The notes: generated from the sequence alone by a model not told the origin. A stretch of 64,000 bases of DNA from Rhodosorus marinus CCMP1338 (GCA_029953675.1 JAMWBK010000008.1:2046001-2110000); one strand, 5' to 3'; positions 1-64,000 are shown, counted from the first letter of the stretch. Numbers and translations: made by a program.

Positions 1-1336
1 GATCGCCGCCAAGGCCGACGAGATGACGCTGCAGCGCTGCACCAGGGGCACACTCTTGGATGAACCCCTCGATCTTGAAGCGGCTCCCGACAGGGATTTA
101 GTTCGTGCCCAGCTCGCTCTACCGTTGCGATTAGGGGGATTTGGCGTCGCAGACCGTGGGCTCGTCTGCTGGCCTGCGGCGATCGCCTCCCGGGCAACCG
201 CGCTCCGTACCTTGGGGGGGTGACTTTCCGGATACAAAGTGCCTGCCTTTTGGCTCGATCACTGACTAACGAGGACCCAGTGACCCTTCCGCCCCAGTTT
301 TTGACGATCTATGATGGTCTACAACACACGTTCTGGAAGTGCAACGCCGTGCCGGACGAGAATCGATCCCGTTTTCGCTCCTGGCGGGAACTTCTATGGG
401 GACGAACTGAGGCGATTGAGGACTTTCCCATCGACAGAGTTCTTGCCGAGGAAGGAGAAGCTAGCCCCGGGTCACCTGTTGCAGATTACCCAGGTCTGAG
501 CCGATTGTGGAGCTCCCGCACTGATGTAGTTCAACATAGCCTCACCTGGGGCCAACACAGTGCCGCTCACGCAATCTTGCTCAACTCTCCGCTCACACCG
601 CCTACCATCGCCGCTCGCCTCCGCGGAATGGGAGGCCATCTCTTGCACCTGTGGTTAACCACTTTGCCTTCGTCGCCGGGTCACCGGCTCGATGATTTCC
701 AGTTCCGCTCCGCCGCACGGATTTACGCAGATTTGGAACAAGCACCGTGGCAATCTAATCGGCCGTCTTTCTGTTAAGGATGTGAGAGCCGGGTTGACGC
801 TTGTGGCTACCCCTTCTTGGGTTCATACGGACTGTTGCGAGGTCTCCGTACGAGGCGCCACACTCGTCTGAAGTACATCCTAAGCGAATGTTTAACTCGG
901 GTAGGGCATACGGTTGAGGTGGAATCGGAACTACCCAGATCGGTCTCGGACACGGCGCCGGCCCGCTGCCTCGCAGATCTCCTCGTCTCAGACCCTGCCG
1001 CCCGACGCTCAGCATAGGTTGACCTCGCGCTTACATGGACTGGACTGGACTTTACTAGCATACCCTGCGGCCAGAGCCCATTTCACTGCTGCCGCCCGCC
1101 GCCGAGGGGCAGCCGCTTCGGCCTTCCGACGAGTGAAGGAACGACCGTATGCTGAGAATATGGCCAATACGTTTTACGCCGAGGGTCGTTCCCACCGGTT
1201 CCACCTTGTCATTGTGGAAAGCATTGATCAAGTGGATAAGTCGGGTTTGGAGTGGTTGCGGGAAGGTTTCGCTGAGCATCCTACTGAGTACTTGGCGCTT
1301 TTACGGCGTTTGAGTGCCGCCCTGTGGCGATATTCT
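1..1336 (+). pseudogene. Degenerate CRE-like non-LTR retrotransposon ORF2 3' half (older F1/F2-type copy); continues at 6208-6390 beyond nested copy A
   Basis: ORF pieces 23-223, 220-777 and 914-1363 align with the C-terminal half of intact ORF2 at 8777-11833 (LPLRLGGFG, WSSRTDV, RFH..IVES) but with stops and frameshifts. Sequence resumes at 6216 (agcagcatgcttgccgagg). Confidence 0.9.
1037..1062 (-). mobile_element. Tail-only F1 insertion (extreme 5' truncation)
   Basis: ggactggactggactttactagcata is the reverse complement of the F1 terminus tatgctagtaaagtccagtccagtcc, inserted inside the older ORF2 between ttacat and ccctg. Confidence 0.75.
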
Positions 1337-1399
1337 GGACTAGACGTTGCTGGACATTACTAGCATAGCCTGAAGCGCTACGCAAGGCGTGAAGATGAA

Positions 1400-4300
1400 C
1401 TAATAACTAGGGAGGGAAGCATGCAACCCCAGGCGCCGATGGCGCCCCTCGGAAAGCATGTGGCTGGAATATCGCCAAAGGGAGACACTTAAACACCTCA
1501 AGAGCGCCAAATATTCAGTAGGATGCTCAGCAAAACATTTCCGCAACCACTCTAAACCCGACTTATCGACGTGACCAAAGCTTTCCACAATGAATGGCTG
1601 GAACCGGTGAGAGCGACCCTCAGCGTAAGGCAGACTGGCCATGCTCTCAGCATACCGTCGTTCCTTAACTCTTCGAAGGGCTGAAGCCGCGGCCCCCCGG
1701 CGGCGGGCGGCTGCGGTGAGGTGGGCGCTGGCCACGGGGCAGGTAATCGCAAGGTCCACATATGTTGAGCGTCTGGCAGCAGCGTCGGAGACGAGGAGAT
1801 CGGCTATACAACGGGGCGGTGCAGAGTCCGAGATTGATCTGGGCAGTTCCGACTCAACCTCAACCGTATGCCCTATCCGAGTCAAAATTCGCTGAGGATG
1901 TACTTGAGGCGAGTGTGACGCCTCGTACGGAGACCTCTCAACAGTCCGCAGGAACCCAGGAAGTGGTAGCCACAAGCGTCAATCCGGCTCTCACATCCCT
2001 GACAGAAAGACGGCCGATTAGAGTGCCATGGAGACTGTGGCAAACCGAGATAGATCCGTGCGGCAGAACGGAACTGGAAAGCATCGAGCCGATGACTCAA
2101 TGACGACGGTAGAGTGGTTAACTACAAGTGAGAGAGGTGGCCTCCCATGCCGCGGAGACGAGCGGCAGTGGTAGGCGGCGTGAGAGGAGAATTGAGCATG
2201 ACTGTGTGAGCGGCACTGTGTTGGCCCCAGGTGAGGCTATGTTGAATCACATCAGTGCGGGAGCTCCACAATCGGCTCAAACCCGGGTAGTCTGCCACAG
2301 GTGACCCGGGGCTAGCCTCTCCGTCATCGGCAAGAACTCGGTCGAGGGGACAATCCTCAATCGCTTCAGCTCGTCCCCATAACAGCTCCTTCCAGGAACG
2401 AAAGCGGGACCGATTCGCGTCCGGCACGGCGTTGCACCTCCTGAACGCGTGTTGAAGACCATCATAAATTGTCAAAAGCGGGGGCGGCAGGGTCACTGGA
2501 TCCTCGCTGGTCAAAGCTCGAGACAAGAGGCAGGCACTTCGCATCTGGAAGGTCACCAACGTTCGCCGCGCGGTAGCCCAGGAAGCAACCGCCGCTGGCG
2601 AGCATACCAGCCCACGGTCTGCCACGCCGAATCCCCCTAATCGCAACGGCGCGAATCAAGTCGCTGTCGGGAGCAGCTTCAAGATCGAGGGGCTCATCCA
2701 AGAGCGTTCCCCAGTGTTGCAGGGTCATTTCGTCGGCTTTAGCCGCGATCCACGAGCCCCAAGCTGGAGGCAGGCTGCGCAACCAGTAGTTGAGTCTGGG
2801 ACCGGCACAAAAGCGGGAAAGCAAGCAGGCCGATTGCAGCATGCTGTCGGGTAGGTGCTCAATGGCGTCGGTGAGTTGCTTGTGCCGTGCCAAAACTCGC
2901 TCGCAGGATGCTTGGACAAAGTTGTCAGTCCCCAATCCGACACCGTGGTGTACAAACCCTTCACGTTCGCTGATTAGTCGGAGAATGGGTGGCAGAGAGG
3001 TCAGCGACACGTCCCTCGGGGGGAGAAAGCGACATTTTTCTGTTTCCACAGTCAAACCGACGCGACGTGCAATCGCTTCGATCTCGGTCAGCCCCCTAGC
3101 CAGCGTCTCAGGGGTGCCCAGCAATGTTACGTCATCGTGGTACGCGCAGATTAGAAGATCCGAGACCTCAGTCGAAAGACGTAAAAGTACGATTTGTAGG
3201 GCACAGGCATGAAGAAGAGGTCCGCAAGGGTCGCCTTGTTGGACGCCAGTATGTGCTTGAAAAACAGTGCCCTCCGTTGTCAAATAGGGGAGTCTCTCCT
3301 CTCCGTAAATACCCGATAGAAACGGCCACGCCTCCGGAAACACCCGTCGGAGCACCTCTAGTGCATGCGTCCGCGACACGCTGTTGAATGCGTTCCGGAA
3401 ATCAACCACCAAGACTCCCTACTCCGGCCTACTGGCGCGTTCTAGCTCGATCCCATGGGTGATCAGTTCGCAACCCCCAGAAAATCCCACCCCTACTTGC
3501 AAGGGCGGCATAAAAGCTGTGACGCGCTGGCGAAGGCGCTGGCATAGCCACCTCCCGGCTAACTTCCGTAGGCTCTCCACCATCCCGATCGGCCGGAGAC
3601 GCGGGTGGGCCGGCTGGTCGTCAGGTTTCGTGAGCAAGCAAAGCTGTGCCTGCCGGAGATGTTCCCATTGCGCAGACGCACGCGATACGCCCTGGAACAA
3701 CTTGTTAAGGATCCTCAGAAGCGCGCTCTGGCCAGGCTGGCTCAGGGCCTGCAATAGCTCTGTTCTTAGTCCGGAGGGTCCGGGACAGCGTCCCCGACGC
3801 GAGGTACGAAGCAAATCCTCCAGGTCAGACTCACTGAGCGTCAGATCGATGCGAAACCTGGCCAACTCCGGACGGTTCAAGAATACCTCGAATTCAGGGG
3901 ACAAGTCTACGTCGGACTCAGGGAACAAAGACGACACCGTCTGGGCGAGACTATCATCGTAGGGGAGGACAGGCGCCTGGCCCTCCAAAACCCGCGCCGC
4001 TCGACTTAAATCGCCCACTGCTACCAATTTCTGTACTCGACACTGTGCCATGCCGAGTCGACGGGCGGATGGTGCTGACGACGCCAAATAGCTGCGCTGT
4101 AGTACTTCGAAGTCTCCCTTCAAGAACAGGGCCAGTCGGTCTCGTACTCGCCATCTGCGCTCCGATGTGTGAATGGGGGCCAGAAACAGGCGCGGCATGA
4201 CCCCCAGGAAAACCCAAATGACTGTGTCCCGAATGTTGCGAGCCAGGCTCGTGAAGATGAAATCGAGAATGGTTCCAGCTACTAGAAGGTCTCCACGAGG

Positions 4301-4441
4301 AAGGACGACTGGGGGAATGCCCCCACGGAGGGGAAGCGAGCCTCCTTCCAAAGAAATCCACAGCCGGAGCCAACTCCGAAAACGCGTACGCCAAATGCCC
4401 CAGTCTCCGCCCTCCTTCAGGACATAAAACTGTAGATCCAT
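1400..4441 (-). pseudogene. F1 copy A ORF2 (RT + CCHC + RLE), broken by a nonsense codon and frameshifts
   Basis: Split into ORFs 3419-4441, 2462-3412, 2122-2646, 1882-2100 and 1400-1975, all colinear with 8777-11833. Confidence 0.92.
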
Positions 4442-4472
4442 AGGCTGCGACCTCGCAGCCGTGCCTGGAGCG

Positions 4473-5882
4473 CTAATCGTGCTTCTCCCCCTTAGACCCG
4501 GGGGAGTCGGTCCTCGCTCTCTTACCTCCTATCCGCACCAAAGTGGTGAGCCGCCCACTCCGCGAGGCTCGCGGAACGGATCCCGCGGGCTTCAGCAAAG
4601 TAACCTGGGCGCCCTCCACCGCCATGCCCTCAGTCTGCTCCCCTGCCTCACCACTCTCGCTGGAAGTGGTGCTGGACGCAGAGCCCTCCAAAATCCCCAA
4701 CCGCTGCAGCTCTGTCTTGTAGCGCGAAGTCAGCACAAGTCGCCTCTCCAGATCGAAGAAACTGGAAACCGCCATGCGCAGGTGACGAGGGCCCGACCGG
4801 AACCGCGCCAACAAGATCCTCTCAAGGCGCTGAATCCGTAGCCAATGGATCGCTGCCGCCTTCACGCTGCTCTCATGCTCAGAGAGCCCTGCCGTTTCTC
4901 CCGGAGACAGGAAATTGCCCGAGAAACGGTCAAAATCGAAGTGCAAAACCACCTGCGGGTTGCAGCGCAGCCACCGGGCGCTCTCAGGCCACTGCTCGGT
5001 AGGCTTCGCCAGCAAGGCCTCCAGGTACTTGGCGGCGGTTGCGGAGACCAAAAACAGCACATCGCGGTCCTCATAGTTTGCGAAGAAGAAATCACCCCGG
5101 CTGCACCCCAACGATTCCGCAAAAGTGTCCCGGAAGTCTCGCGTAGACGGAACCTGGCCTCGTGTAGTCTGGGGCCGGACATTTCGCACCCACAGAAATT
5201 GGAGAGTGGTCTCCACAGGTCCATCCTGAGGCTCGCGAGATGGTAGGAAACGGAGCATGGCCGCCGTACGTGTGGCAGTGGTGCCCTTCCGCAAGACTGA
5301 TGCGTACGAAGCGCCCCCCTTGCGGCCACCACGTGCCCCCGCAGTAGCCGGGAGCTGGTGACCACCTGAGGGCTGGTCCAAGATAGGGAAGTCCACAGCT
5401 GCAGTTTCCTCCACACCGGTTGCCGCACAGTCACCACCACCATTGCCTCGAGTCCCCGAGCGCTGAAGCGCGTTTTGGCCCGGCCTGCCGCTCCCCAACG
5501 TCGTACTTTCCCGCGCAGAAGCAACAGCCCTCGCCTGTCCCGGGACAGGTTCATGTTGATTGACCTGATGTTGACTGCCTTCAGCCAACGCTGCCATTCT
5601 GGTGCAATTCAAATTCTCGTCCGAATTTGAATTTGACCTGGCCAGCAATCCCGATTCCAGCCCACCTAGCTTCTGGGTGAGCTGAGGGAGCACTCCACGA
5701 TCACTCGCAGCCGTGATCAGGCTGGTGACAGCGGAGATAAGTGCACGCGCCTGGGTGCCAGAAGCGCCTTCCAAGTCAACCTCGGAAGAAAACGTGCCGC
5801 AGCTGAGGCGAACACGGAGTCCCCCACCTGGCAGTGCCTCCTTGGGAGGAGGCTCCGTCGAGCGCGGAGATATCCCTACCAT
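4473..5882 (-). CDS. F1 copy A ORF1, 469 aa from the first ATG, function unknown
   Basis: Open frame (track ORF 4473-6113 starts at TTG; first ATG at 5882, MVGISPRSTEPP), nearly identical to ORF1 of copies B and C. Confidence 0.8.
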   Translation of the reverse strand: MVGISPRSTEPPPKEALPGGGLRVRLSCGTFSSEVDLEGASGTQARALISAVTSLITAASDRGVLPQLTQKLGGLESGLLARSNSNSDENLNCTRMAALAEGSQHQVNQHEPVPGQARAVASARESTTLGSGRPGQNALQRSGTRGNGGGDCAATGVEETAAVDFPILDQPSGGHQLPATAGARGGRKGGASYASVLRKGTTATRTAAMLRFLPSREPQDGPVETTLQFLWVRNVRPQTTRGQVPSTRDFRDTFAESLGCSRGDFFFANYEDRDVLFLVSATAAKYLEALLAKPTEQWPESARWLRCNPQVVLHFDFDRFSGNFLSPGETAGLSEHESSVKAAAIHWLRIQRLERILLARFRSGPRHLRMAVSSFFDLERRLVLTSRYKTELQRLGILEGSASSTTSSESGEAGEQTEGMAVEGAQVTLLKPAGSVPRASRSGRLTTLVRIGGKRARTDSPGSKGEKHD

Positions 5883-6215
5883 CCTGAGGGAATGCGCAAA
5901 GGAAACGTTGCACCACCAATATGAAACCGCACCGAGAGAATAATCGACCAAACCCAACCCAAATAGGAAAGGCCCCGCAACACACCCACCCGGAAGACAG
6001 AAGTAGTTGCAAATGCAAACGACGCACCGCGGAAAATCGAGGGGAAGGCGTACCAGAGGAAGCGCTTCCCGTAAACGAACACGCTCGCGACCGAAAAAGA
6101 AACAAAACCCCAATCCTCAGCCAGACCACAGCTATCTGAGCACGAGACCAGTGTGTCTTGTCTTGGAGTATCCCTCACTAGTATGCCGGTGAGTTTGGCT
6201 TATATAGGATATTCT

Positions 6216-7045
6216 AGCAGCATGCTTGCCGAGGCGCGCCATCGGCGCCTGGGTTTTCAAATGCATATTGGTCTCCCTGCACTGTCCGAAGATACCCGTC
6301 TATCAAACTAGGCGATAAATCTCTTCCCTCTCATCAAGCTTCCCTTCCTAGTTCTTAGTTCCTTTTCACGCCTTGCGTAGCGCCTCAGTAAAGCACAGTT
6401 AAGGCTAACGCTTGTGGCTGCCACTTCTTGGGTTCAATGAGGACTGTTGTGAGGTCTCCGCACGAGGCGTAACACTCGTCTTGGCGCTTTTACGGCCTTT
6501 GAGTGTCGCCCTGTGGCGACATTCTAGCAGCATGCTTGCCGAGGCGCGCCATCGGCGCCTGGGTTTGCACGCTTCCCTCCCCAGTTCTTAGTTCCTTTTC
6601 ACGCCTTGCGTAGCGTTTCAGGCTAGGCTAGTGCCCTTGCGATTACCTGCCCCGTGGCCAGCGCCCACCTCACCGCAGCCGCCCGCCGCCGGGGGGCCGC
6701 GGCTTCAGCCCTTCGAAGAGTTAAGGAACGACGGTATGCTGAGAGCATGGCCAGTCTGCCTTGCGCTGAGGGTCGCTCTCACCGGTTCCAGCCATTCATT
6801 GTGGAAAGCTTTGGTCACGAGGATAATTCGGGTTTAGAGTGGTTGCGGAAATGTTTTGCTGAGCATCTTACTGAATATTTGGCGCTCGTGAGGCGTTTAA
6901 GTGTCTCCCTTTGGCGATATTCCAGCGACATGCTTTCCGAGGCGCGCCTTCGGCGCCTGGGGTTGCATGCTTCCCTCCCTAGTTATTAGTTCATCTTCAC
7001 GCCTTGCGTAGCGCTTCAGGCTATGCTAGTAAAGTCCAGTAAACG
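6216..7045 (+). mobile_element. Stack of three F2/F1 3'-end fragments between copies A and B
   Basis: Terminal motif cacgccttgcgtagcg occurs three times (about 6368, 6599 and 6998). The last fragment, 6633-7045, encodes the RLE C-terminus (ORF 6654-6989) and ends tatgctagtaaagtccagtaaa. Confidence 0.88.
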
Positions 7046-7335
7046 CGAACGCTGGCCACCGAGTGAGTCAAGAAGTCCTAGTCTGGGGTGGTTGTTGTCG
7101 AGGATTGGGGTTTTGTTTCTTTTTCGGTAGCGAGCGTGTTCGTTTACGGGAAGCGCTTCCTCTGGTACGCCTTCCCCTCGATTTTCCGCGGTGCGTCGTT
7201 TGCATTTGCAACTACTTCTGTCTTCCGGGTGGGTGTGTTGCGGGGCCTTTCCTATTTGGGTTGGGTTTGGTCGATTATTCTCTCGGTGCGGTTTCATATT
7301 GGTGGTGCAACGTTTCCTTTGCGCATTCCCTCAGG

Positions 7336-8745
7336 ATGGTAGGGATATCTCCGCGCTCGACGGAGCCTCCTCCCAAGGAGGCACTGCCAGGTGGGGGACT
7401 CCGTGTTCGCCTCAGCTGCGGCACGTTTTCTTCCGAGGTTGACTTGGAAGGCGCTTCTGGCACCCAGGCGCGTGCACTTATCTCCGCTGTCACCAGCCTG
7501 ATCACGGCTGCGAGTGATCGTGGAGTGCTCCCTCAGCTCACCCAGAAGCTAGGTGGGCTGGAATCGGGATTGCTGGCCAGGTCAAATTCAAGTTCGGACG
7601 AGAATTTGAATTGCCCCAGAGTGGCAGCGTTGGCTGAAGGCAGTCAACATCAGGTCAATCAACATGAACCTGTCCCGGGACAGGCGAGGGCTGTTGCTTC
7701 TGCGCGGGACAGTACGACGTTGGGGAGCGGCAGGCCGGGCCAAAACGCGCTTCAGCGCTCGGGGACTCGAGGCAATGGTGGTGGTGACTGTGCGGCAACC
7801 GGTGTGGAGGAGACTGCAGCTGTGGACTTCCCTCTCTTGGACCAGCCCTCAGGTGGTCACCAGCTCCCAGCTACTTCGGGGGCACGTGGTGGCCGCAAGG
7901 GGGGCGCTTCGTACGCATCAGTCTTGCGGAAGGGCACCACTGCCACACGTACGGCGGCTATGCTCCGTTTCATACCATCTCGCGAGCCTCAGGATGGACC
8001 TGTGGAGACCACTCTCCAATTTCTGTGGGTGCGAAATGTCCGGCCCCAGACTACACGAGGACAGGTTCCGTCTATGCGAGACTTCCGGGACACTTTTACG
8101 GAATCGTTAGGGTGCAGCCGGGGTGATTTCTTCTTCGCAAACTATGAGGACCGCGATGTGCTGTTTTTGGTCTCCGCAACCGCCGCCAAGTACCTGGAGG
8201 CCTTGCTGGCGAAGCCTACCGAGCAGTGGCCTGAGAGCGCCCGGTGGCTGCGCTGCAACCCGCAGGTGGTTTTGCACTTCGATTTTGACCGTTTCTCGGG
8301 CAATTTCCTGTCTCCGGGAGAAACGGCAGGGCTCTCTGAGCATGAGAGCAGCGTGAAGGCGGCAGCGATCCATTGGCTACGGATTCAGCGCCTTGAGAGG
8401 ATCTTGTTGGAGCGGTTCCGGTCGGGCCCTCGTCACCTGCGCATGGCGGTTTCCAGTTTCTTCGATCTGGAGAGGCGACTTGTGCTGACTTCGCGCTACA
8501 AGACAGAGCTGCAGCGGGCGGGGATTTTGGAGGGCTCTGCTTCCAGCACTACTTCCAGCGAGAGTGGTGAGGCAGGGGAGCAGACTGAGGGCATGGCGGT
8601 GGAGGACGCCCAGGTTACTTTGCTGAAGCCCGCGGGATCCGTTCCGCGAGCCTCGCGGAGTGGGCGGCTCACCACTTTGGTGCGGATAGGAGGTAAGAGA
8701 GCGAGGACCGACTCCCCCGGGTCTAAGGGGGAGAAGCACGATTAG
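7336..8745 (+). CDS. F1 copy B ORF1, 469 aa from the first ATG
   Basis: Open frame with ATG at 7336. Low-complexity Ser/Gly-rich ends and a central segment (LQFLWVRNVRP...DFFFANYEDRDVLFLV) that is also conserved in F2. Confidence 0.82.
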   Translation: MVGISPRSTEPPPKEALPGGGLRVRLSCGTFSSEVDLEGASGTQARALISAVTSLITAASDRGVLPQLTQKLGGLESGLLARSNSSSDENLNCPRVAALAEGSQHQVNQHEPVPGQARAVASARDSTTLGSGRPGQNALQRSGTRGNGGGDCAATGVEETAAVDFPLLDQPSGGHQLPATSGARGGRKGGASYASVLRKGTTATRTAAMLRFIPSREPQDGPVETTLQFLWVRNVRPQTTRGQVPSMRDFRDTFTESLGCSRGDFFFANYEDRDVLFLVSATAAKYLEALLAKPTEQWPESARWLRCNPQVVLHFDFDRFSGNFLSPGETAGLSEHESSVKAAAIHWLRIQRLERILLERFRSGPRHLRMAVSSFFDLERRLVLTSRYKTELQRAGILEGSASSTTSSESGEAGEQTEGMAVEDAQVTLLKPAGSVPRASRSGRLTTLVRIGGKRARTDSPGSKGEKHD

Positions 8746-8776
8746 CGCTCCAGGCACGGCTGCGAGGTCGCAGCCT

Positions 8777-11700
8777 ATGGATCTACAGTTTTATGTCCTG
8801 AAGGAGGGCGGAGACTGGGGCATTTGGCGTACGCGTTTTCGGAGTTGGCTCCGGCGGTGGATTTCTTTGGAAGGAGGCTCGCTTCCCCTCCGTGGGGGCA
8901 TTCCCCCAGTCGTCCTTCCTCGTGGAGACCTTCTAGTAGCTGGAACCATTCTCGATTTCATCTTCACGAGCCTGGCTCGCAACATTCGGGACACAGTCAT
9001 TTGGGTTTTCCTGGGGGTCATGCCGCGCCTGTTTCTGGCCCCCATTCACACATCGGAGCGCAGATGGCGAGTACGAGACCGACTGGCCCTGTTCTTGAAG
9101 GGAGACTTCGAAGTACTACAGCGCAGCTATTTGGCGTCGTCAGCACCATCCGCCCGTCGACTCGGCATGGCACAGTGTCGAGTACAGAAATTGGTAGCAG
9201 TGGGCGATTTAAGTCGAGCGGCGCGGGTTTTGGAGGGCCAGGCGCCTGTCCTCCCCTACGATGATAGTCTCGCCCAGACGGTGTCGTCTTTGTTCCCTGA
9301 GTCCGACGTGGATTTGGCCCCTGAATTCGAGGTATTCTTGGACCGTCCGGAGTTGGCCAGGTTTCGCATCGATTTGACGCTCAGTGAGTCTGACCTGGAG
9401 GATTTGCTTCGTACCTCGCGTCAGGGACGCTGTCCCGGACCCTCCGGACTAAGAACAGAGCTATTGCAGGCCCTGAGCCAGCCTGGCAAGAGCGCGCTTC
9501 TGAGGATCCTTAACAAGTTGTTCCAGGGCGTATCGCGTGCGTCTGCGCCATGGGAACATCTCCGGCAGGCACAGCTTTGCTTGCTCACGAAACCTGACCA
9601 CCAGCCGGCCCACCCGCGTCTCCGGCCAATCGGGATGGTGGAGAGCCTACGCAAGTTAGCCGGGAGGTGGCTATGCCAGCGCCTTCGCCAGCGCGTCACA
9701 GCTTTTATGCCGCCCTTGCAAGTAGGGGTGGGATTTTCTGGGGGTTGCGAACTGATCACCCATGGGATCGAGCTAGAACGCGCCAGTAGGCCGGAGTGGG
9801 GAGTCTTGGTGGTTGATTTCCAGAACGCATTCAACAGCGTGTCGCGGACGCATGCGCTAGAGGTGCTCCGACGGGTGTTTCCGGAGGCGTGGCCGTTTCT
9901 ATCGGGTATTTACGGAGGGGAGAGCCTCCCCTACTTGACAACGGAGGGCACTGTTTTTCAAGCACATACTGGCGTCCAACAAGGCGACCCTTGCGGACCT
10001 CTTCTTCATGCCTGTGCCCTACAGCTCGTACTTTTACGTCTTTCGACTGAGGTCTCGGATCTTCGAATCTGCGCGTACCACGATGACGTAACATTTCTGG
10101 GCACCCCTGACACCCTGGCTAGGGGACTGACCGCGATCGAAGCGATTGCACGTCGCGTCGGTTTGACTGTGGAAACAGAAAAATGTCGCTTTCTCCCCCC
10201 GAGGGACGTGTCGCTGACCTCTCTGCCACCCACTCTGCGACTAATCAGCGAACGTGAAGGGTTCGAACACCACGGCGTCGGATTGGGGACTGACAACTTT
10301 GTCCAAGCATCCTGCGAGCGAGTTTTGGCACGGCACAAGCAACTCACCGACCCAATTGAGCACCTACCCGACAGCATGCTGCAATCGGCCTGCTTGCTTT
10401 CCCGCTTTTGTGCCGGTCCCAGACTCAACTACTGGTTGCGCAGCCTGCCTCCAGCTTGGGGCTCGGGGATCGCGGCTAAAGCCGACGAAATGACGCTGCA
10501 ACACTGGGGAACGCTCTTGGATGAGCCCCTCGATCTTGAAGCTGCTCCCGACAGGGACTTTGTTCGTGCACAGATCGCTCTACCGTTGCGATTAAGGGGA
10601 TTCGGCGTCGCAGACCGTGGGCTGGTATGCTCGCCAGCGGCGGTTGCTTCCTGGGCTACCGCGCTGCGAACGTTGGTGACCTTCCAGATGCGAAGTGCCT
10701 GCCTCTTGGCTCGAGCTTTGACCAACGAGGATCCAGTGACCCTGCCGCCCCCGCTTTTGACAATTTATGATGGTCTTCAACACGCGTTCAGGAGGTGCAA
10801 CGCCGTGCCGGACGCAAATCGGTCCCGCTTTCGTTCCTGGAGGGAGCTGTTATGGGGACGAGCTGAAGCGATTGAGGATTGTCCCCTCGACCGAGTTCTT
10901 ACCGATGACGGAGAGGCTAGCCCCGGGTCACCTGTTGCAGACTACCCGGGTTTGAGCCGATTGTGGAGCTCCCGCACTGATGTGATTCAACATAGCCTCA
11001 CCTGGGGCCAACACAGTGCCGCTCACACAGTCATGCTCAATTCTCCTCTCACGCCGCCTACCACTGCCGCTCGTCTCCGCGGCATGGGAGGCCACCTCTC
11101 GCACTTGTGGTTAACCACTCTACCGTCGTCATTGAGTCATCGTCTCGATGCTTTCCAGTTCCGTTCTGCCGCACGGATCTATCTCGGTTTGCCACAGGCT
11201 CCGTGGCACTCTAATCGGCCGTCTTTCTGTCAGGGATGTGAGAGCCGGATTGACGCTTTTGGCTACCACTTCCTGGGTTCCTGCGGACTGTTGCGAGGTC
11301 TCCGTACGAGGCGTCACACTCGCCTCAAGTACATCCTCAGCGAATATTTGACTCGGATAGGGCATACGGTTGAGGTTGAGTCGGAACTGCCCAGATCAAT
11401 CTCGGACTCTGCACCGCCCCGTTGTATAGCCGATCTCCTCGTCTCCGACGCTGCTGCCAGACGCTCAACATATGTGGACCTTGCGATTACCTGCCCCGTG
11501 GCCAGCGCCCACCTCACCGCAGCCGCCCGCCGCCGGGGGGCCGCGGCTTCAGCCCTTCGAAGAGTTAAGGAACGACGGTATGCTGAGAGCATGGCCAGTC
11601 TGCCTTGCGCTGAGGGTCGCTCTCACCGGTTCCAGCCATTCATTGTGGAAAGCTTTGGTCACGTGGATAAGTCGGGTTTAGAGTGGTTGCGGAAACGTTT

Positions 11701-11833: not shown

Positions 11834-11871
11834 TTCATCTTCACGCCTTGCGTAGCGCTTCAGGCTATGCT

Positions 11872-12190
11872 AGTAAAGTCCAGTAAAGTCCAGTCCAGTA
11901 AAGTCCAGTAAAGTCAAGTAAAGTCCAGTCCAATAAAGGCATTAAAGCCCAGAAAAGCCCATAAAAGCCCAGTAATGCCAGTAATGCCCAGAAAAGGCCA
12001 GAAAAGCCCAGTACAGCCCAGTAAAGCCAGTAATGCCCAGAAAAATCCAGAAAAGTCCAGGAAGCCGAGGAATGCCAGTAAAGCCCAGTAAAGCCAGTAA
12101 AGCCAGTAAAAGCCAGTAAAGCCTAGTAAAGCCGATAACGCCCAGTAAAGCCAGTAACGCCCAGTAAAGTCTGGGTTTAGTAAAGCTAAG
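11872..12190 (+). repeat. Degenerate 9-10 bp tandem array (AGTAAAGTCC / AGTAAAGCC(C)), 3' tail of copy B
   Basis: Near-perfect AGTAAAGTCC units at the start, grading into variants (AGAAAAGCCC, AGTAATGCC, AATAAAGGC). Confidence 0.92.
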
Positions 12191-15430: not shown

Positions 15431-15436
15431 GATAAG

Positions 15437-23010: not shown

Positions 23011-23067
23011 AGTAGAGCAGAATTCAACTACTGGTTATTACTGGCATAAACACCGCTTTTTTTTATA

Positions 23068-41701: not shown

Positions 41702-41944
41702 AGTGAGGGATACTCCAAGACAATTAAAAGAGGGAGTCACATACACGAAAGATTGTTTGCTCACGCCTTCTGTTCCAAGAGCTAAAATAAGAGGAAGAGA
41801 TACACGTGGTAGTGGTGGTTTACGTACATACACTTAGGCGCTACGCAGGATGAATTGCGAATCAGCAGCCTACTAGGGAACAAAAAGTATGCACGCCTTG
41901 GCAGAGGGTAGGACGCTTCCGTAGAAGACTGCCTCAAACTTTAC

Positions 41945-51700: not shown

Positions 51701-54700
51701 AGTGGTTAACCACAAGTGCGAGAGGTGGCCTCCCATGTTGGCCCCAGGTGAGGCTATGTTGAATCACATCAGTGCGGGAGCTCCACAATCGGCTCAAACC
51801 CGGGTAGTCTGCAACAGGTGAGCCGGGGCTAGCCCCTCCGTCATCGGCAAGAACTCGGTCGAGGGGACAATCCTCAATCGCTTCAGCTCGTCCCCATAAC
51901 AGCTCCCTCCAGGAACGAAAGCGGGACCGATTTGCGTCCGGCACGGCGTTGCACCTCCTGAACGCGTGTTGAAGACCATCATAAATTGTCAAAAGCGGGG
52001 GCGGCAGGGTCACTGGATCCTCGTTGGTCAAAGCTCGAGCCAAGAGGCAGGCACTTCGCATCTGGAAGGTCACCAACGTTCGCAGCGCGGTAGCCCAGGA
52101 GGCAACCGCCGCTGGCGAGCATACCAGCCCACGGTCTGCGACGCCGAATCCCCCTAATCGCAACGGTAGAGCGATCTGTGCACGAATCAAGTCCCTGTCG
52201 GGAGCAGCTTCAAGATCGAGGGCTCATCCAAGAGCGTTCCCCAGTGTTGCAGGGTCATTTCGTCGGCTTTAGCCGCGATCCACGAGCCCCAAGCTGGAGG
52301 CAGGCTGCGCAACCAGTAGTTGAGTCTGGGACCGGCACAAAAGCGGGAAAGCAAGCAGGCCGATTGCAGCATGCTGTCTGGTAGGTGCTCAATGGCGTCG
52401 GTGAGTTGCTTGTGCCGTGCCAAAACTCGCTCGCAGGATGCTTGGACAAAGTTTTCAGTCCCCAATCCGACGCCGTGGTGTTCGAACCCTTCACGTTCGC
52501 TGATTAGTCGCAGAGTGGGTGGCAGAGAGGTCAGCGACACGTCCCTCGGGGGCAGAAAGCGACATTTTTCTGTTTCCACAGTCAAACCGACGCGACGTGC
52601 AATCGCTTCGATCGCGGTCAGCCCCCTAGCCAGGGTGTCAGGGGGTGCCCAGCAGTGTTACGTCATCGTGGTACGCGCAGATTCGAAGATCCGAGACCTC
52701 AGTCGAAAGACGTAAAAGTACGAGCTGTAGGGCACAGGCATGAAGAAGAGGTCCGCAAGGGTCGCCTTGTTGGACGCCAGTATGTGCTTGAAAAACAGTG
52801 CCCTCCGTTGTCAAGTAGGGGAGGCTCTCCCCTCCGTAAATACCCGATAGAAACGGCCACGCCTTGGGAAACACCCGTCGGAGCACCTCTAGCGCATGCG
52901 TCCGCGACACGCTGTTGAATGCGTTCCGGAAATCAACCACCAAGACTCCCCACTCCGGCCTACTGGCGCGTTCTAGCTCGATCCCATGGGTGATCAGTTC
53001 GCAACCCCCAGAAAATCCCACCCCTACTTGCAAGGGCGCCATAAAAGCTGTGACGCGCTGGCGAAGGCGCTGGCATAGCCACCTCCCGGATAACTTCCGT
53101 AGGCTCTCCACCATCCCGATCGGCCGGAGACGCGGGTGGGCCGGCTGGTGGTCAGGTTCCGTGAGCAAGCAAAGCTGTGCCTGCCGGAGATGTTCCCATG
53201 GCGCAGACGCACCCAATACGCCCTGGAACAACTTGTTGAGGATCCTCAGAAGCGCGCTCTGGCCAGGCTGGCTCAGGGCCTGCAATAGCTCTGTTCTTAG
53301 TCCGGAGGGTCCGGGACCGCGTCCCCGACGCGAGGTACGAAGCAAATCCTCCAGGTCAGACTCACTGAGCGTCAGATCGATGCGAAACCTGGCCAACTCC
53401 GGACGGTCCAAGAATACCTCGAATTCAGGGGACAAGTCCACGTCGGACTCAGGGAACAAAGACGACACCGTCTGGGCGAGACTATCATCGTAGGGGAGGA
53501 CAGGCGCCTGGCCCTCCAAAACCCGCGCCGCTCGACTTAAATCGCCCACTGCTATCAATTTCTGTACTCGAGCCGGCACGGGCGACACTTTGCCATGCCG
53601 AGTCCGACGGGCGGATGGTGCTGACGACGCCAAATAGCTGCGCTGTAGTACTTCGAAGTCTTCCTTCAAGAACCGGGCCAGTCGGTCTCGTACTCGCCAT
53701 CTGCGCTCCGATGTGTGAATGGGGGCCAGAATCAGGCGCGGCATGACCCCCAGAAAAACCCAAATGACTGTGTCCCGAATGTTGCGAGCCAGGCTCGTGA
53801 AGATGAAATCGAGAATGATTCCAGCTACTAGAAGGTCTCCACGAGGGAGGACGACTGGGGGAATGCCCCCACGGAGGGGAAGCGAGCCTCCTTCCAAAGA
53901 AATCCACCGCCGGAGCCAACTCCGAAAACGCGTACGCCAAATGCCCCAGTCTCCGCCCTCCTTCAGGACATAAGACTGTAGATCCATAGGCTGCGACCTC
54001 GCAGCCGTGCCTGGAGCGCTAATCGTGCTTCTTCCCCTTAGACCCGGGGGAGTCGGTCCTCGCTCTCTTACCTCCTATCCGCACCAAAGTCGTGAGCCGC
54101 CCACTCCGCGAGGCTCGCGGAACGGAAACCGCGGGCTTCAGCAAAGTAACCTGGGCGTCCCCCACCGCCATGCCCTCAGTCTGCTCCCCTGCCTCACCGC
54201 TCTCGCTGGAAGTAGTGCTGGAAGCAGAGCCCTCCAAAATCCCCACCCGCTGCAGCTCTGTCTTGTAGCGCGAAGTCAGCACAAGTCGCCTCTCCAGATC
54301 GAAGAAACTGGACACCGCCATGCGCAGGTGACAAGGGCCCGACCGGAAGCGCTCCAACAAGATCCTCTCAAGGCGCTGAATCCGTAGCCAATGGATCGCT
54401 GCCGCCTTCACGCTGCTCTCACGCTCAGAGAGCCCTGCCGTTTCTCCCGGAGACAGGAAATTGCCCGAGAAACGGTCAAAATCGAAGTGCAAAACCACCT
54501 GCGGGTTGCAGCGCAGCCACCGGGCGCTCTCAGGCCACTGCTCGGTAGGCTTCGCCAGCAAGGCCTCCAGGTACTTGGCGGCGGTTTCGGAGACCAAAAA
54601 CAGCACATCGCGGCCCTCATAGTTTGCGAAGAAGAAATCACCCCTGCTGCACCCTAACGATTCCGCAAAAGTGTCCCGGAAATCTCGCATAGACGGAACC

Positions 54701-57400
54701 TGTCCTCGTGTAGTCTGGGGCCGGACATTTCGCACCCACAGAAATTGGAGAGTGGTCTCCACAGGTCCATCCTGAGGCTCGCGAGATGGTAGGAAACGGA
54801 GCATAGCCGCCGTACGTGTGGCAGTGGTGCCCTTCCGCAAGACTGATGCGTACGAAGCGCCCCCCTTGCGCCGCAGTAGCGGGGAGCTGGTGACCACCTG
54901 AGGGCTGGCCCAAGAGAGGGAAGTCCACAGCTGCAGTCTCCTCCACACCGGTTGCCGCACAGTCACCACCACCATTGCCTCGAGTCCCCGAGCGCTGAAG
55001 CGCGTTTTGGCCCGGCCTGCCGCTCCCCAACGTCGTACTGTCCCGCGCAGAAGCAACAGCCCTCGCCTGTCCCGGGACAGGTTCATGTTGATTGACCTGA
55101 TGTTGACTGCCTTCAGCCAACGCTGCCACTCTGGGGCAATTCAAATTCTCGTCCGAATTTGAATTTGACCTGGCCAGCAATCCCGATTCCAGCCCACCTA
55201 GCTTCTGGGTGAGCTGAGGGAGCACTCCACGATCACTCGCAGCCGTGATCAGGCTGGTGACAGCGGAGATAAGTGCACGCGCCTGGGTGCCAGAAGCGCC
55301 TTCCAAGTCAACCTCGGAAGAAAACGTGCCGCAGCTGAGGCGAACACGGAGTCCCCCACCTGGCAGTGCCTCCTTGGGAGGAGGCTCCGTCGAGCGCGGA
55401 GATATCCCTACCATCCTGAGGGAATGCGCAAAGGAAACGTTGCACCACCAATATGAAACCGCACCGAGAGAATAATCGACCAAACTCAACCCAAATAGGA
55501 AAGGCCCCGCAACACACCCACCCGGACGACAGAAGTAGTTGCAAATGCAACGACGCCCCGCGGAAAATCGAGGGGAAGGCGTACCAGAGGAAGCGCTTCC
55601 CGTAAACGAACACGCTCGCGACCGAAAAAGAAACAAAACCCCAATCCTCGACAACTACCAAAACGCCCAATACTTGTCAGCTCGCAACCCCCGGAAAATC
55701 CCACCCCGACCTGCAAGGGTGCCATAAAGGCGGTGACCCGCTGGCGAAGGCGCTGGCATAGCCACCTCCCAGCTAACTTCCGTAGACTCTCGACCGTACC
55801 GATCGGCCGGAGACGCGGGTGTGCCGGCTCGTGGTCGGGTTTCGTGAGCAAGCAAAGTTATGCCCGTCGCAGATGGTCCCAAGCGGTAGGCGCACCCCCT
55901 GCACCCTGGAATAGCATATTCAGGAGCTTCACCAGTGCGCTCTGGCCAGGCTTGCTCAAGGCCTGCAGTAGTTCCATTCGGAGCCCGGAGGGTCCAGGGC
56001 AGCGTCCACGCCGGGAGGTCCGGAGCAAATCCTCCAGATCAGAATCACGGAGCGTCAGGTCGATGCGAAACCTGGCCAACTCTGGACGATCTAAAAAGGC
56101 GTCGAAGTCGGGTAGCATGTCCACGTCGGACGAAGGGAACACGCTGACACAGTCTGGTCGAGACTCTCGTCGTAGGGGAGGACAGGCGCCTGGCCCTCCA
56201 GGACCCGTGCCGCTCGGCTGAGGTCGCCCACTGCTTTCTGTACTCGAGCCGTGACGGGCGAGACTGGTCCAGGCCGAGCCCGACGGACAGAGGGTTCCGA
56301 TGACGCCAAGTAGCTTTGCTGCAACACCTCAAATTCCCCCTTCAGGAACATGGCCAGTCGTTCCCGGACGCGCCATCTGCGCGCCGATGTGTGAGTGGGG
56401 GTCAGAATCAGGCGCGGCATGACTCCCAGAAATTGCCACGTGACGGTATCGCGAAAGTTACGTGCCAGACTCGTGAAAATGAAGTCCAGGATGGTCCCAG
56501 CCACTAAGAGCTCTCCTCGAGGTAGGACGACAGGCGGAATCCTGCCACGGAGGGGTAGGAAACCTCCTTCCATATCAATCCACCGCCGGAGTCAACTCCG
56601 AAAATGCGTCCTCCAGATGCCCCAGTCTCCGCCCTCCTTCAAGACATAAGACTGCAGGTCCATGGGCTGCGATCGCGCAGCCAAACCTGGGGAACTAATC
56701 GTGCTTCTCCCCCTTAGACCCGGGGGAGTCGGTCCTAATCCGTTTGGTGCTTTGCCCTCCTAAGGTTGTCAGACGGCCGCTCCTCGATGCTCGCAGTATA
56801 TTGCCTGCTGGGTTAGACGAATCGTTCGGGAGTCTCTCAACCGACATGCCCTCCGGCGCTCCCACTTCGCCACTATCACTGGAACTGGTACTAGAGGCAG
56901 ATCCATCTAACATCCCTAGCCGCTGAAGCGCTGACTTGTAGCCCGAGTTCAGCACGAGGCGCCGCTCCCGATCGAAAATGGTGGAGACGGCCGCGCGCAT
57001 GTGGCGTGGACCCGTCCGAAAGCGCTCCAACAAGATCCTCTCGATGCGATGAATGCGCAACCAATGAATAGCTGCCGCCTTCACGCGGCTGTCCTGCTCC
57101 GAAAGCCCTTCAGTCTGCCCTGGGGACAAGAACTGACCGGAGAACCGGTCGAACGCAAAGTGCATGGTGACCTTTGGGTGGCCACTAACCATCGTGCACT
57201 TTCGGGCCACTGCTCGGTGGGTTTCCCGAGCAACGCTTGAAGGTAAGTGGTGGCGTTCGCTGTGACGAGGAAGTGAACGTCGCGACCCTCCGTGTTGGCA
57301 AAAATAAAATCTTCACGACGACAGCCCAAGGATTCCGCAAAAACGTTCCGAAAATCGCGCAGACTCAGTACTTGGCCCCGGGTTGTCAACCCGTCTGTGC
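48742..57400 (-). mobile_element. Near-full-length F2 element interrupted by F1 copy D
   Basis: Tail at 48742-48793. ORF2 pieces 48833-50917 and 55677-56663 join in register (GFSGGCEL|ITHAIE). ORF1 homolog at 56695-57400. The 5' end is truncated and approximate. Confidence 0.88.
50918..55676 (-). mobile_element. Full-length F1 retrotransposon, copy D (frameshifts, small internal deletion)
   Basis: TSD TCAGCT at 50912-50917 and 55677-55682. ORF2 split (52638-53987, 52187-52585, 51606-52190, 51422-51736, 50987-51346); ORF1 split (54638-55654, 54019-55086). Confidence 0.93.
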
Positions 57401-60119: not shown

Positions 60120-61050
60120 GGACTTACTGGTGTTCGTTTTACTGGTTTTTATTGGTTTTTATTGGTCTTTATTGGTTTTATTGGTCTTGGTCTTTATTGG
60201 TCTTTATTGGCTGAGGCGCTACGCAAGGCGTGAAAGGGAACTAGGAACTAGGTACGGAAGCGTGCAAACCCAGGTGCCGATGGCGCGCCTCGGCAAGCAT
60301 GCTGCTCGAATATCGCCACAGAGCATAGCCTGAAGCAACTACGCAAGGCGTGAAAGGGAATTAAGAACTAGGTAGGGAAGCGTGCAAACCCAGGCGCCGA
60401 TGTCGCGCCTCGGCAAGCATGCTGCTCGAATATCGCCACATAGAGGCGCTTAAACGCCGCAAAATTTCCAAGTATTCAACAGGATGATCAGTAAAGCATT
60501 TTTTCAGCAACCACTCCAAACCCGACTTCTCCACGTGACCAAAGCTTTCCACAATGAAAGGCTGGAACCGGTGGGAGCGACCCTCAGCGCGAGGCAGACT
60601 GGCCATACTCTCAGCATACCATTGATCTTTATTAGCATAGTCTGAAGCGCTGCGCACGGCGTGAAAGGGAGCTAAAAACTAGGTAGGGAAGCGTGCAAAC
60701 CCAGGCGCCGATGTCGCGCCTCGGCAAGCATGCTGCTCGAATATCGCCACAGACCGATACTTAAACCTCGCAAAAGTTCCAAGTATTCAACAGGATGCTC
60801 AGTAAAGCATGTCCGGGTTTTTATTAGAATAGCTTAAAAGGGCTAGTGGTTTTACTAACATAGCCTGATGCGCTACGCAACAGGTGAAGGAAACTGTGGA
60901 CTGGGGGGAAGAGCATGTAAACCCTGGCGGCGGTGGCGCACCTCGGCGAGCATTTTGCTAGAATACCGCCAGAGAGCGACACTTCAACACCGGAGAAGCA
61001 CAAGATGCTCTTCAGGATGTTCTAGCTTTGGGGGAGTCCATCTTTGGGGG
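60120..61050 (-). mobile_element. Tandem stack of 4-5 F2 3' ends preceded by a degenerate (TCTTTATTGG)n tail array
   Basis: Array at 60120-60210. Termini at about 60211, 60322 (joined exactly after TGCT), 60630, 60825 and 60855. Confidence 0.88.
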
Positions 61051-61580: not shown

Positions 61581-61736
61581 AAATCAACGGAGTACTTTGG
61601 GCCGGGAACGTAGAGCTTGCGCGGTCTGCGTGTAGGTCAGTCGGATGAGCCACTGATTTCTTATTTTTTTTTTATCGTAGCTGAAGACCCTGGGGTGGAG
61701 GGTCAATCCCAATCATTTTGCCTTGCTAGTGATAGA

Positions 61737-63106
61737 CGCTCTTGGATGAGCCCCTCGATCTTGAAGCTGCTCCCGACAGGGACTTTATTCGTGCACAGAT
61801 CGCTCTACCGTTGCGATTAGGGGGATTCGGCGTCGCAGACCGTGGGCTGGTATGCTCGCCAGCGGCGGTTGCCTCCTGGGCTACCGCGCTGCGAACGTTG
61901 GTGACCTTCCGGATGCGAAGTGCCTGCCTCTTGGCTCGAGCTTTGACCAACGAGGATCCAGTGACCCTGCCGCCCCCGCTTTTGACAATTTATGATGGTC
62001 TTCAACACGCGTTCAGGAGGTGCAACGCCGTGCCGGACGCAAATCGGTCCCGCTTTCGTTCCTGGAGGGAGCTGTTATGGGGACGAGCTGAAGCGATTGA
62101 GGATTGTCCCCTCGACCGAGTTCTTGCCGATGACGGAGAGGCTAGCCCCGGGTCCCCTGTTGCAGACTACCCGGGTTTGAGCCGATTGTGGAGCTCCCGC
62201 ACTGATGTGATTCAACATAGCCTCACCTGGGGCCAACACAGTGCCGCTCACACAGTCATGCTCAATTCTCCTCTCACGCCGCCTACCACTGCCGCTCGTC
62301 TCCGCGGCATGGGAGGCAACCTCTCGCACTTGTGGTTAACCACTCTACCGTCGTCATTGAGTCATCGTCTCGATGCTTTCCAGTTCCGTTCTGCCGCACG
62401 GATCTATCTCGGTTTGCCACAGGCTCCGTGGCACTCTAATCGGCCGTCTTTCTGTCAGGGATGTGAGAGCCGGATTGACGCTTGTGGCTACCACTTCCTG
62501 GGTTCCTGCGGACTGTTGCGAGGTCTCCGTACGAGGCGTCACACTCGCCTCAAGTACATCCTCAGCGAATCTTTGACTCGGATAGGGCATACGGTTGAGG
62601 TTGAGTCGGAACTGCCCAGATCCATCTCGGACTCTGCACCGCCCCGTTGTATAGCCGATCTCCTCGTCTCTGACGCTGCTGCCAGACGCTCAACATATGT
62701 GGACCTTGCGATTACCTGCCCCGTGGCCAGCGCCCACCTCACCGCAGCCGCCCGCCGCCGGGGGGCCGCGGCTTCAGCCCTTCGAAGAGTTAAGGAACGA
62801 CGGTATGCTGAGAGCATGGCCAGTCTGCCTTGCGCTGAGGGTCGCTCTCACCGGTTCCAGCCATTCATTGTGGAAAGCTTTGGTCACGTGGATAAGTCGG
62901 GTTTAGAGTGGTTGCGGAAATGTTTTGCTGAGCATCCTACTGAATATTTGGCGCTCTTGAGGCGTTTAAGTGTCTCCCTTTGGCGATATTCCAGCGACAT
63001 GCTTTCCGAGGCGCGCCATCGGCGCCTGGGGTTGCATGCTTCCCTCCCTAGTTATTAGTTCATCTTCACGCCTTGCGTAGCGCTTCAGGCTATGCTAGTA
63101 AAGTCC
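61737..63106 (+). mobile_element. 5'-truncated F1 element
   Basis: ORF 61742-63058 is the open C-terminal 438 aa of ORF2; TSD AGTGATAGA at 61728-61736 and 63107-63115. Confidence 0.93.
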
Positions 63107-63117
63107 AGTGATAGAGA

Positions 63118-63971
63118 CAGTCATGCTCAATTCTCCTCTCACGCCGCCTACCACTGCCGCTCGTCTCCGCGGCATGGGAGGCCACCTCTCGCACTTGTGG
63201 TTAACCACTCTACCGTCGTCATTGAGTCATCGTCTCGATGCTTTCCAGTTCCGTTCTGCCGCACGGATCTATCTCGGTTTGCCACAGGCTCCGTGGCACT
63301 CTAATCGGCCGTCTTTCTGTCAGGGATGTGAGAGCCGGATTGACGCTTGTGGCTACCACTTCCTGGGTTCCTGCGGACTGTTGCGAGGTCTCCGTACGAG
63401 GCGTCACACTCGCCTCAAGTACATCCTCAGCGAATCTTTGACTCGGATAGGGCATACGGTTGAGGTTGAGTCGGAACTGCCCAGATCCATCTCGGACTCT
63501 GCACCGCCCCGTTGTATAGCCGATCTCCTCGTCTCTGACGCTGCTGCCAGACGCTCAACATATGTGGACCTTGCGATTACCTGCCCCGTGGCCAGCGCCC
63601 ACCTCACCGCAGCCGCCCGCCGCCGGGGGGCCGCGGCTTCAGCCCTTCGAAGAGTTAAGGAACGACGGTATGCTGAGAGCATGGCCAGTCTGCCTTGCGC
63701 TGAGGGTCGCTCTCACAGGTTCCAGCCATTCATTGTGGAAAGCTTTGGTCACGTGGATAAGTCGGGTTTAGAGTGGTTGCGGAAATGTTTTGCTGAGCAT
63801 CCTACTGAATATTTGGCGCTCTTGAGGCGTTTAAGTGTCTCCCTTTGGCGATATTCCAGCGACATGCTTTCCGAGGCGCGCCATCGGCGCCTGGGGTTGC
63901 ATACTTCCCCCCCTAGTTATTAATTCATCTTCACGCCTTGCGTAGCGCTTCAGGCTATGCTAGTAAAGTCC
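63118..63971 (+). mobile_element. Second 5'-truncated F1 element at the same target site
   Basis: ORF 63108-63923; flanked by AGTGATAGAGA at 63107-63117 and 63972-63982. Confidence 0.92.
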
Positions 63972-64000
63972 AGTGATAGAGATAATCTGGGGTTACGTAA

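Follow-up and report, generated by a model that had tools for sequence, protein, structure and literature searches.

Long interspersed nuclear elements (LINEs) that carry a restriction-like endonuclease (RLE) are usually thought to persist by homing to multicopy genes of their host. Here we describe F1, an element of this type that lies, together with its relative F2, in a 64,000-nucleotide stretch of the Rhodosorus marinus CCMP1338 genome (GCA_029953675.1 JAMWBK010000008.1:2046001-2110000; the whole of this stretch is called the window). F1 has a real but loose preference for inserting at TGC(T)^AG (the caret marks the nick), and the copies of the family form head-to-tail arrays that are far from random and that grew by successive insertions over time, not by one template-jumping event. 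Among the closest described systems, most RLE clades are target-specific while HERO is mixed (PMC4640811). The Zepp LINEs of green algae target copies of themselves that are already in place, giving arrays composed mostly of 5'-truncated 3' ends (PMC8226300), and their clusters have a higher G+C content than the genome around them (PMC8226300, PMC3446292). Double insertions with a target-site duplication (TSD) in the junction are documented for site-preferring transposons such as R1, the P element and others (McGurk and Barbash, bioRxiv 10.1101/158386). Self-built landing arrays, as in Zepp, and double insertions with a junction TSD are therefore already known; what appears to be new here is the combination of features: a two-ORF (open reading frame) RLE element with no recognisable DNA-binding domain, a tail of decamer repeats, and a short degenerate nick motif that the element also carries at its 3' boundary.

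The family was mapped over the whole window by blastn, with copy B (7037-11881) as the reference. About 25 pieces of this one LINE family make up about half of the 64 kb. F1 accounts for ten of them, at 97-100% identity to B (A, t6635, B, C, t31587, t46960, t47046, D, t61736 and t63117); F2 and related pieces number about a dozen, at 75-86% identity to B, and the two oldest pieces lie at 15435 and 21465. Four of the F1 copies are referred to throughout:
7044-11871, + strand: F1 copy B, the sole copy in the window whose two ORFs are intact (ORF1, 7063-8745; ORF2, 8777-11833).
1337-6207, - strand: F1 copy A, ORF2 broken; tail 1337-1361, body 1362-6118, and 89 extra 5' bases at 6119-6207.
50918-55676, - strand: F1 copy D, with a 69-bp internal deletion and broken ORFs, hosted by an F2 copy (48795-50917 plus 55677-57387).
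26744-31798, + strand: F1 copy C (26767-31581), followed by the fragment t31587 (31587-31772).
The 5' junctions are highly variable, extra unrelated bases numbering 89 in A and 16 in D, with ~37 additional or variable bases following the upstream tail in B. At the 5' junction of C, a run of 20 A (26747-26766) separates the upstream AGTAAA from the 5' end of the element.

The intact copy B encodes an ORF1 of 560 aa, in which Pfam recognises no domain, and an ORF2 of 1018 aa:
8777-11833, + strand: ORF2, with a reverse transcriptase (RT) at about residues 200-480, a CCHC knuckle (C818, C821, H831, C836), and then H847, E868, D901 and K931.
By its sequence and modelled fold, ORF2 is a LINE-type RT with a CCHC knuckle and then an R2-like PD-(D/E)xK restriction-like endonuclease on its C-terminal side, without an apurinic/apyrimidinic endonuclease (APE). 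The original prediction of an RLE-bearing element is borne out: ORF2 matches Pfam RVT_1 (E=1.7e-15); among PDB sequences, R2 proteins score best (E=1.6e-12), above L1 ORF2p; and the C-terminus carries C-x2-C-x9-H-x4-C followed by RH, E, (A)D, VD and K, with C818, C821, C836, H847, E868, D901 and K931 invariant, and H831 almost so, in alignments with distant homologues. For the final 318 residues, an AlphaFold model (mean predicted local distance difference test score, pLDDT, of 77) finds R2 proteins in all of its top seven PDB fold matches, with E-values down to 1.5e-7, and no Exo_endo_phos domain was detected by Pfam in ORF1 or ORF2 (E up to 10 for ORF1, ORF2 residues 1-208 and the C-terminal part of ORF2). 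The nearest proteins among 5.8 billion, which include two red-alga proteins and one sponge protein, reach at most 34% identity to ORF2; the exact ORF2 protein has no record in the assembly index, the 22-nt 3' end has no match in metagenome contigs, and the contig of the best relative (L001) carries no comparable tail or array. F1 and F2 are best explained as a previously unsampled lineage of non-long-terminal-repeat retrotransposons, of RLE type by its domains. Like R2, CRE, NeSL-Utopia, R4-Dong and HERO, F1 has the order RT, CCHC knuckle, PD-(D/E)xK endonuclease and no APE, and F1 and F2 share with the RLE group 5' truncation, variable 5' junctions and sequence-biased integration. In contrast to that group, F1 carries two ORFs and lacks a recognisable N-terminal zinc finger or Myb domain, its target is a short degenerate motif instead of a host multicopy gene, and in F1 and F2 the TSDs vary from 6 to 12 bp and the 3' tail is a decamer repeat.

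The preference of F1 is read from empty sites rebuilt from the TSDs and given in element orientation, of which four to six are informative, all in this single window:
Copy A site, GCTGCT^AGAATATC: TSD of 8 nt, 1329-1336 and 6208-6215, on the antisense strand in the 3' region of an older F2 copy (1-1336/6208-6388).
61.7 kb site, CCTTGCT^AGTGATAG(AG): TSD of 8-10 nt, at 61728, 63107 and 63972, in sequence not recognisably of the family.
Copy D site, GGTTGCG^AGCTGA: TSD of 6 nt, 50912-50917 and 55677-55682, within an F2 ORF.
46.9 kb site, ACTGCAA^GCTTAATGCAT: TSD of 11 nt, 46938-46948 and 47162-47172.
Copy C site, CGTT^AGTAAA: 6 nt, 26744-26749 and 31793-31798, a TSD indistinguishable from tail sequence.
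The junctions and TSDs described in the original prediction were all found where it had placed them. At A, 61.7 kb and D, the TSD borders are unambiguous because the base preceding each TSD copy differs between the two; a search for TSDs found none for the F2 copy at 48795-57387, for the fragment at 41.3 kb, for the 60-kb array, or for the old fragments at 15435 and 21465. The upstream flank of copy C weakly resembles an old 3' end of the family (p=0.02), and the flanks at 61.7 kb and 46.9 kb have no significant similarity to such ends (p=0.1 and p=0.065, respectively). Chance was assessed by Monte Carlo, with 200,000 random draws of positions from the window without F1. The four F1 sites reach a strict total of 17 out of 24 matches to TGCT^AG, with two perfect hexamers and one site matching at five of six positions, and none of the 200,000 draws attained this score; for the upstream TGCT bases alone, P=4.9e-4. 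When two non-matching sites are added, the values become P=9e-4 for the hexamer and P=8e-3 for the upstream bases only. The upstream half of the motif does not stem from pairing between primer and tail, since these bases lie across the nick from the primer. What the sites have in common is only YTGCN^AG, which is short of a one-sequence specificity in the sense of R2 or CRE. The claimed targeting of TGCT^AG thus stands as a significant enrichment at F1 sites and fails as an obligatory rule, given the F2 array, a micro-insertion and empty TGCTAG sites that are weighed below.

The same motif is found at the 3' end of the element itself. F1 ends in ...GGCTATGCT (...GCGTAGCGCTTCAGGCTATGCT) followed by a tail of (AGTAAAGTCC)n, and F2 likewise closes with TGCT, its tail being (AATAAAGMCC)n. 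An older sub-lineage (6375-6388, 60211-60224 and 15700-15711) ends in ...GCGCCTCAG or ...GCTTCA directly before the tail, without the terminal GCTATGCT; a TGCT end is thus not universal in the family. Every F1 tail stops in phase, at ...GTCC or at a short AGTCC unit, and abuts a TSD that starts with AG, or with GG at 46.9 kb; this is consistent with the CT-3' end of the nicked strand pairing with the AG of a tail unit. Past AG(T), TSDs and tail agree at ~6 of 26 positions, the level expected by chance, so that homology to the tail is no explanation for the sites outside elements. Two hairpins are predicted in the conserved 3' region (11790-11871 and its equivalents), a long one of the form AGGCGC...GCGCCT and a terminal one, GCGTAG/CTATGC, whose stem stops one base before the tail; conservation is high and covariation almost nil, and most of this hairpin-bearing region is also the end of ORF2.

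Reuse of a single nick is displayed at 61.7 kb:
61728-63981, + strand: double insertion, made of a TSD, F1 (reference position 3475 to the end) with one tail unit, a TSD, F1 (reference position 3991 to the end) with one tail unit, and a TSD.
Three copies of the AGTGATAG(AG) TSD surround two copies that are truncated at different points and differ at 5 of 855 positions; these differences mark them as separate insertions at the same bottom-strand nick. By simple arithmetic, the chance that two of ~10 insertions share position and orientation in 64 kb is ~3.5e-4. Private substitutions amount to 1 in 1361 positions in the upstream copy and 3 in 845 in the downstream copy. The lower number in the upstream copy weakly suggests that the second insertion hit the site restored at the 5' junction (CTTGCT^AGTGATAG) and not GTCC^AGTGATAG. 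Tail-to-internal arrangement, distinct 5' truncations and a TSD within the junction are also the structure of the double-insertion tandems of site-preferring transposons. The difference is that repeat hits there follow from the host target alone, whereas the 3' end of F1 adds a second candidate site.

Four arrays or stacks extend this pattern:
6481-7043, + strand: stack leading into B, with an F2-like 3' fragment at 6481-6629 (ending in GGCT), AGTG(C), and an F1 fragment at 6635-7027 with the tail AGTAAAGTCCAGTAAA.
23016-26243, - strand: F2 tandem pair, 24784-26122 and then 23089-24776, with the TSD TTGAATTCTGCT at 23016-23027 and 26232-26243.
46938-47172, - strand: 46.9 kb tandem of short F1 3' fragments, 47056-47156 and then 46970-47045, with the TSD GCTTAATGCAT at both ends.
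60137-60991, - strand: 60-kb array of four F2-type 3' fragments of mixed subfamily or age, followed by a tail of ~75 nt.
Together with the pair formed by C and t31587, the window holds eight tail-to-internal junctions, all joining copies in the same orientation: those already noted at 31581-31586, 47045, 24779, 60322 and 6628, and three further ones at 7043, 60621 and 60816. They differ in how much of the upstream tail has been kept:
f60322 / f60211: 0 nt.
C / t31587: 5 nt (TGCT+AGTAA).
f6481 / t6635: 4-5 nt.
F2 24777 / 23079: 7 nt (TGCT+AATAAAG).
t47046 / t46960: 9-10 nt (TGCT+AGTAAAGTC(C)).
f60627 / f60322: 13 nt.
t6635 / B: 16 nt.
f60851 / f60627: 41 nt.
New copies thus lie in or next to existing ones, in same-orientation arrays of 3' ends of mixed age. 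The fraction of insertions at the 3' ends of other copies, which the original prediction proposed to compare with the random expectation, is above chance in the window: four of ~10 F1 insertions lie no more than 16 nt from one of the ~20 3' ends of the family and share its orientation, for which simple arithmetic gives a chance of ~1e-8. Within the 60-kb array, identity between members is only 70-90%, and in the 6.5-kb stack an F2-like fragment precedes the F1 copies. In the same stack, t6635 carries three times as many private substitutions per 100 nt as B downstream of it (1.27 versus 0.42) and is thus the older of the two. These differences in age or subfamily among neighbours (60-kb array, 6.5-kb stack, t6635 and B) argue for growth by repeated insertion. 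A further trace of it may be seen downstream of B:
11872-12169, + strand: composite tail array, with two F1-type AGTAAAGTCC blocks, each closing with a short AGTCC unit, and then ~25 degenerate AGWAAAGCCC units.
This tail of ~300 bp looks like several displaced tails in a row, two of F1 type and then an older one of GCCC type, as expected if later insertions push older tails downstream; the AGTCC closure is also found in the solo tails of A and of the micro-insertion at 1038-1062. Slippage duplication was considered for the 191-bp repeat at 31395-31777 and dropped, as no microhomology flanks it.

F1 and F2 show the same self-stacking as Zepp, and their elements, at 57-60% G+C in surroundings of ~49-52%, show the same G+C enrichment. 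In comparison, Zepp is an L1-clade APE element of unrelated sequence with a poly(A) tail, whereas F1 is of RLE type with a decamer tail, and no defined short target motif is given for Zepp (PMC8226300, PMC3446292). Zepp clusters occur once per chromosome; the comparison with F1 and F2 spans one 64-kb window only.

As a whole, the locus is probably, on balance, best explained by an RLE lineage in which a nick biased to YTGCN^AG, target-primed reverse transcription (TPRT) and the rebuilding of sites allow repeated hits to stack copies upon one another. Integration would proceed by TPRT: the first, bottom-strand nick would be biased to YTGCN^AG, and the freed 3' end would pair over 2-3 nt (CT-3' to AG or AGT) with the first bases of a unit of the RNA tail. 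Such pairing would explain why F1 tails close in phase (...GTCC) immediately ahead of a TSD beginning with AG. The second strand would be cut at a variable distance of 6-12 bp downstream, giving the TSD. With a half-site restored at the 5' junction by this TSD, and with TGCT^AG(TAAAG...) at the end of the element itself, at least two more nick sites in the same orientation would be available at an occupied locus, and repeated hits over evolutionary time would build head-to-tail stacks of 5'-truncated copies. We infer that the endonuclease, or a DNA-binding part associated with it, reads TGC, and the site hit in the tandems would be the element's own 3' boundary and not the tail in general. In a bolder version, which we regard as tentative and rather unlikely, the boundary between 3' untranslated region (UTR) and tail (TGCT^AGTAAAG) would be the cognate target and generic TGCTAG sites occasional seeds, so that arrays would need no host repeat and might form centromere-like clusters; in its radical form, the 3' end of the RNA (UGCU/AG) may guide the nick through base pairs that it forms with the bottom strand on both sides of the cut.

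Several observations weigh against this account, in whole or in part. The F2 array has a 12-nt TSD, TTGAATTCTGCT, at GAGGTGC^TT, where TGCT is obtained only with a shift of 1 nt and AG is absent; the strict nick at 46.9 kb likewise lies 1 nt off the motif, which only a TGCA^AG reading restores. Two micro-insertions in the window fall outside the motif, one of them being:
1038-1062, - strand: 25-nt micro-insertion, TATGCT+AGTAAAGTCC AGTCC AGTC, within F2 ORF2, without a TSD.
Its target, CAGGG^CATG, does not match the motif. The window contains 32 TGCTAG sites, 12 at element 3' ends and 20 elsewhere, and 18 of the latter 20 are empty. The junctions that keep 13, 16 and 41 nt of tail are better fitted by nicks deeper in the tail (GTCC^AG), and the second hit at 61.7 kb could likewise have fallen at GTCC^AGTGATAG. 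The conservation of the terminal CTATGC may reflect a role in the predicted RNA hairpin instead of a role as target. Pfam recognises no DNA-binding domain in ORF1 or in the N-terminus of ORF2, where ~200 aa precede the RT. Lastly, the sample is one window with four to six informative sites, and no additional copies of the family were retrieved from any collection searched.

The question as to whether the element's own 3' end attracts insertions should be separated from the preference itself. TGCTAG occurs about once per 1.9 kb, both strands counted, and a 6-mer this common would not by itself concentrate insertions on element ends across the genome. Own-end TGCTAG sites have been hit in 3 of 12 cases and other TGCTAG sites in 2 of 20, rates that we judge not clearly different, the raw counts being small. 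The five junctions with remnants of 0-10 nt are compatible with a boundary nick and a TSD whose length is in or close to the range seen here, whereas nicks deeper in the tail are the better fit for the other three; for B, a GTCC^AG nick that gives a TSD of 6 nt is no less likely than a boundary nick. The readable F1 tandem insertions in the window are all at ends of the ^AG type, none at F2-type TGCT^AA ends, which is consistent with either AG-specific nicking or AG priming. These junctions do not separate nicking at the boundary between UTR and tail from nicking elsewhere in the tail. Self-seeding through the own-end hexamer is plausible: of the proposal that F1 builds self-seeding arrays, the target preference and the sequential same-orientation stacking hold, and the hexamer as attractant does not follow from remnants of 13-41 nt or from hit rates of 3/12 and 2/20.

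Template jumping is an established property of the R2 reverse transcriptase, and this counts in favour of the alternative in which the tandems are single events of this kind; their junctions would reflect RNA 3' ends and not a DNA target, and the TGCT^AG preference of the solo sites could be real without seeding any array. A single jump is possible for the near-identical pairs, since C and t31587 are identical over 192 nt but for a single indel and the two 46.9 kb fragments differ at 1 position in 86; these junctions contain no distinguishable TSD, and the junction remnants of 0-41 nt do not keep phase with the tail unit as target-primed tails do. However, the 60-kb array and the 6.5-kb stack combine fragments of unlike subfamily and age, a TSD such as that between the 61.7 kb copies is an impossible product of a jump, and the composite tail after B suggests several separate tails. 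As the origin of the tandems overall, we consider template jumping unlikely.

Less likely again is the alternative in which the whole decamer tail is the preferred target in occupied loci, any ^AG unit boundary being open to nicking or priming and the TGCT at the UTR boundary being incidental there. B is preceded by AGTAAAGTCC AGTAAA, which fits a GTCC^AG nick with a 6-nt TSD, the same length as that of C; the remnants of 13 and 41 nt in the 60-kb F2 array and the in-phase ends of all F1 tails before AG point the same way, and several RLE lineages are microsatellite-specific (PMC4640811). F1 indeed resembles the microsatellite-targeting LINEs (Dong/R4, Togen and some HERO elements) in its repeat tail, in priming by short homology to the tail and in that each insertion adds target-like repeat. 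It differs from them in that the solo sites of A, D, 46.9 kb and 61.7 kb do not lie in repeats, repeat flanks (older family tail) being found only at B and C, and in that F1 targets share TGC upstream of the nick, where pairing between primer and tail cannot act. The solo sites, in other words, lack tail similarity past AG(T) and yet have the upstream TGC in common; moreover, five of the eight junctions keep at most 10 nt of tail, so that nicks cluster at the tail start, and the window holds no tail-like array away from element ends.

That there is no sequence targeting at all, the tandems having arisen by unequal exchange or slippage in a repeat-rich, perhaps heterochromatic or centromere-like region and the motif matches by chance, would suit a window that is half F-family with a copia element and other repeats besides and has many empty TGCTAG sites, but it is already disfavoured by the data, and very improbable, in view of the motif statistics (0/200,000 draws; P=4.9e-4), of one nick exactly reused with distinct truncations and three TSD copies, and of tandem partners that differ in 5' end point and subfamily, which is not a product of unequal exchange.

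Other features of the window touch the family more loosely. The F2 copy that hosts A has its 3' region interrupted by a 75-bp insertion (6260-6334). A separate F2 piece is accompanied by an inverted one:
41300-41682, within 41225-41701, + strand: F2 3' fragment with a two-unit tail.
41225-41246, - strand: inverted 12-nt 3' end plus AGTAAAAACC, facing the 5' end of the F2 fragment at 41300 from a distance of 53 nt.
The inverted piece may have originated from priming at both nicks of one site; twin priming was considered for this pair and dropped, because the inverted piece is the extreme 3' end and not upstream sequence. An identical 22-mer, AGTGAGGGATACTCCAAGACAA, occurs twice, at 6158-6179 (- strand), within the 89 extra 5' bases of A, and at 41702-41723 (+ strand), directly after the tail of the 41.3-kb F2 fragment, with divergent flanks on either side. 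The 22-mer could be the 5' end of a captured RNA (e.g., a leader) or a shared target; it has no match in Rfam, and Rfam and tRNA scans of the whole window returned no match. The 89 extra bases of A also contain the TATA-like CTATATAAG. Another repeat family lies beside several F-family copies (15370-15434, 22485-22651, 22880-23000 and 42080-42230), with the patterns …CGCGCTTA-T/A run-…CAGCCTCC… and AACGCCCTGACC…GTTGTTTACCCGTTTA….

Two further ORFs may be mentioned:
33217-37032, + strand: Ty1/copia polyprotein ORF of 1271 aa, apparently intact.
47267-47722, + strand: ORF with four RTX-type calcium-binding nonapeptide repeats (Pfam HemolysinCabind, E=1e-30).
Protein matches to the copia polyprotein in the full-length range reach at most 35% identity, and a single match of 39% spans 21% of the query; with matches this distant, its source lineage is poorly sampled. 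The RTX-repeat ORF, uncommon in a eukaryote-like region, adjoins the 46.9 kb insertion.

Were the preference of F1 to consist of AG microhomology only, the locus would be an ordinary pile of LINE fragments. If the account favoured here is true, a short, loose motif at the element's own end would give RLE-type LINEs another route to safe ground, namely the element's own dead copies, and would link RLE elements to the self-nesting of Zepp-type clusters. F1 would also offer a compact system for the choice of nick by an R2-like enzyme without a recognisable zinc-finger or Myb domain, which bears on current efforts to retarget R2-type proteins.

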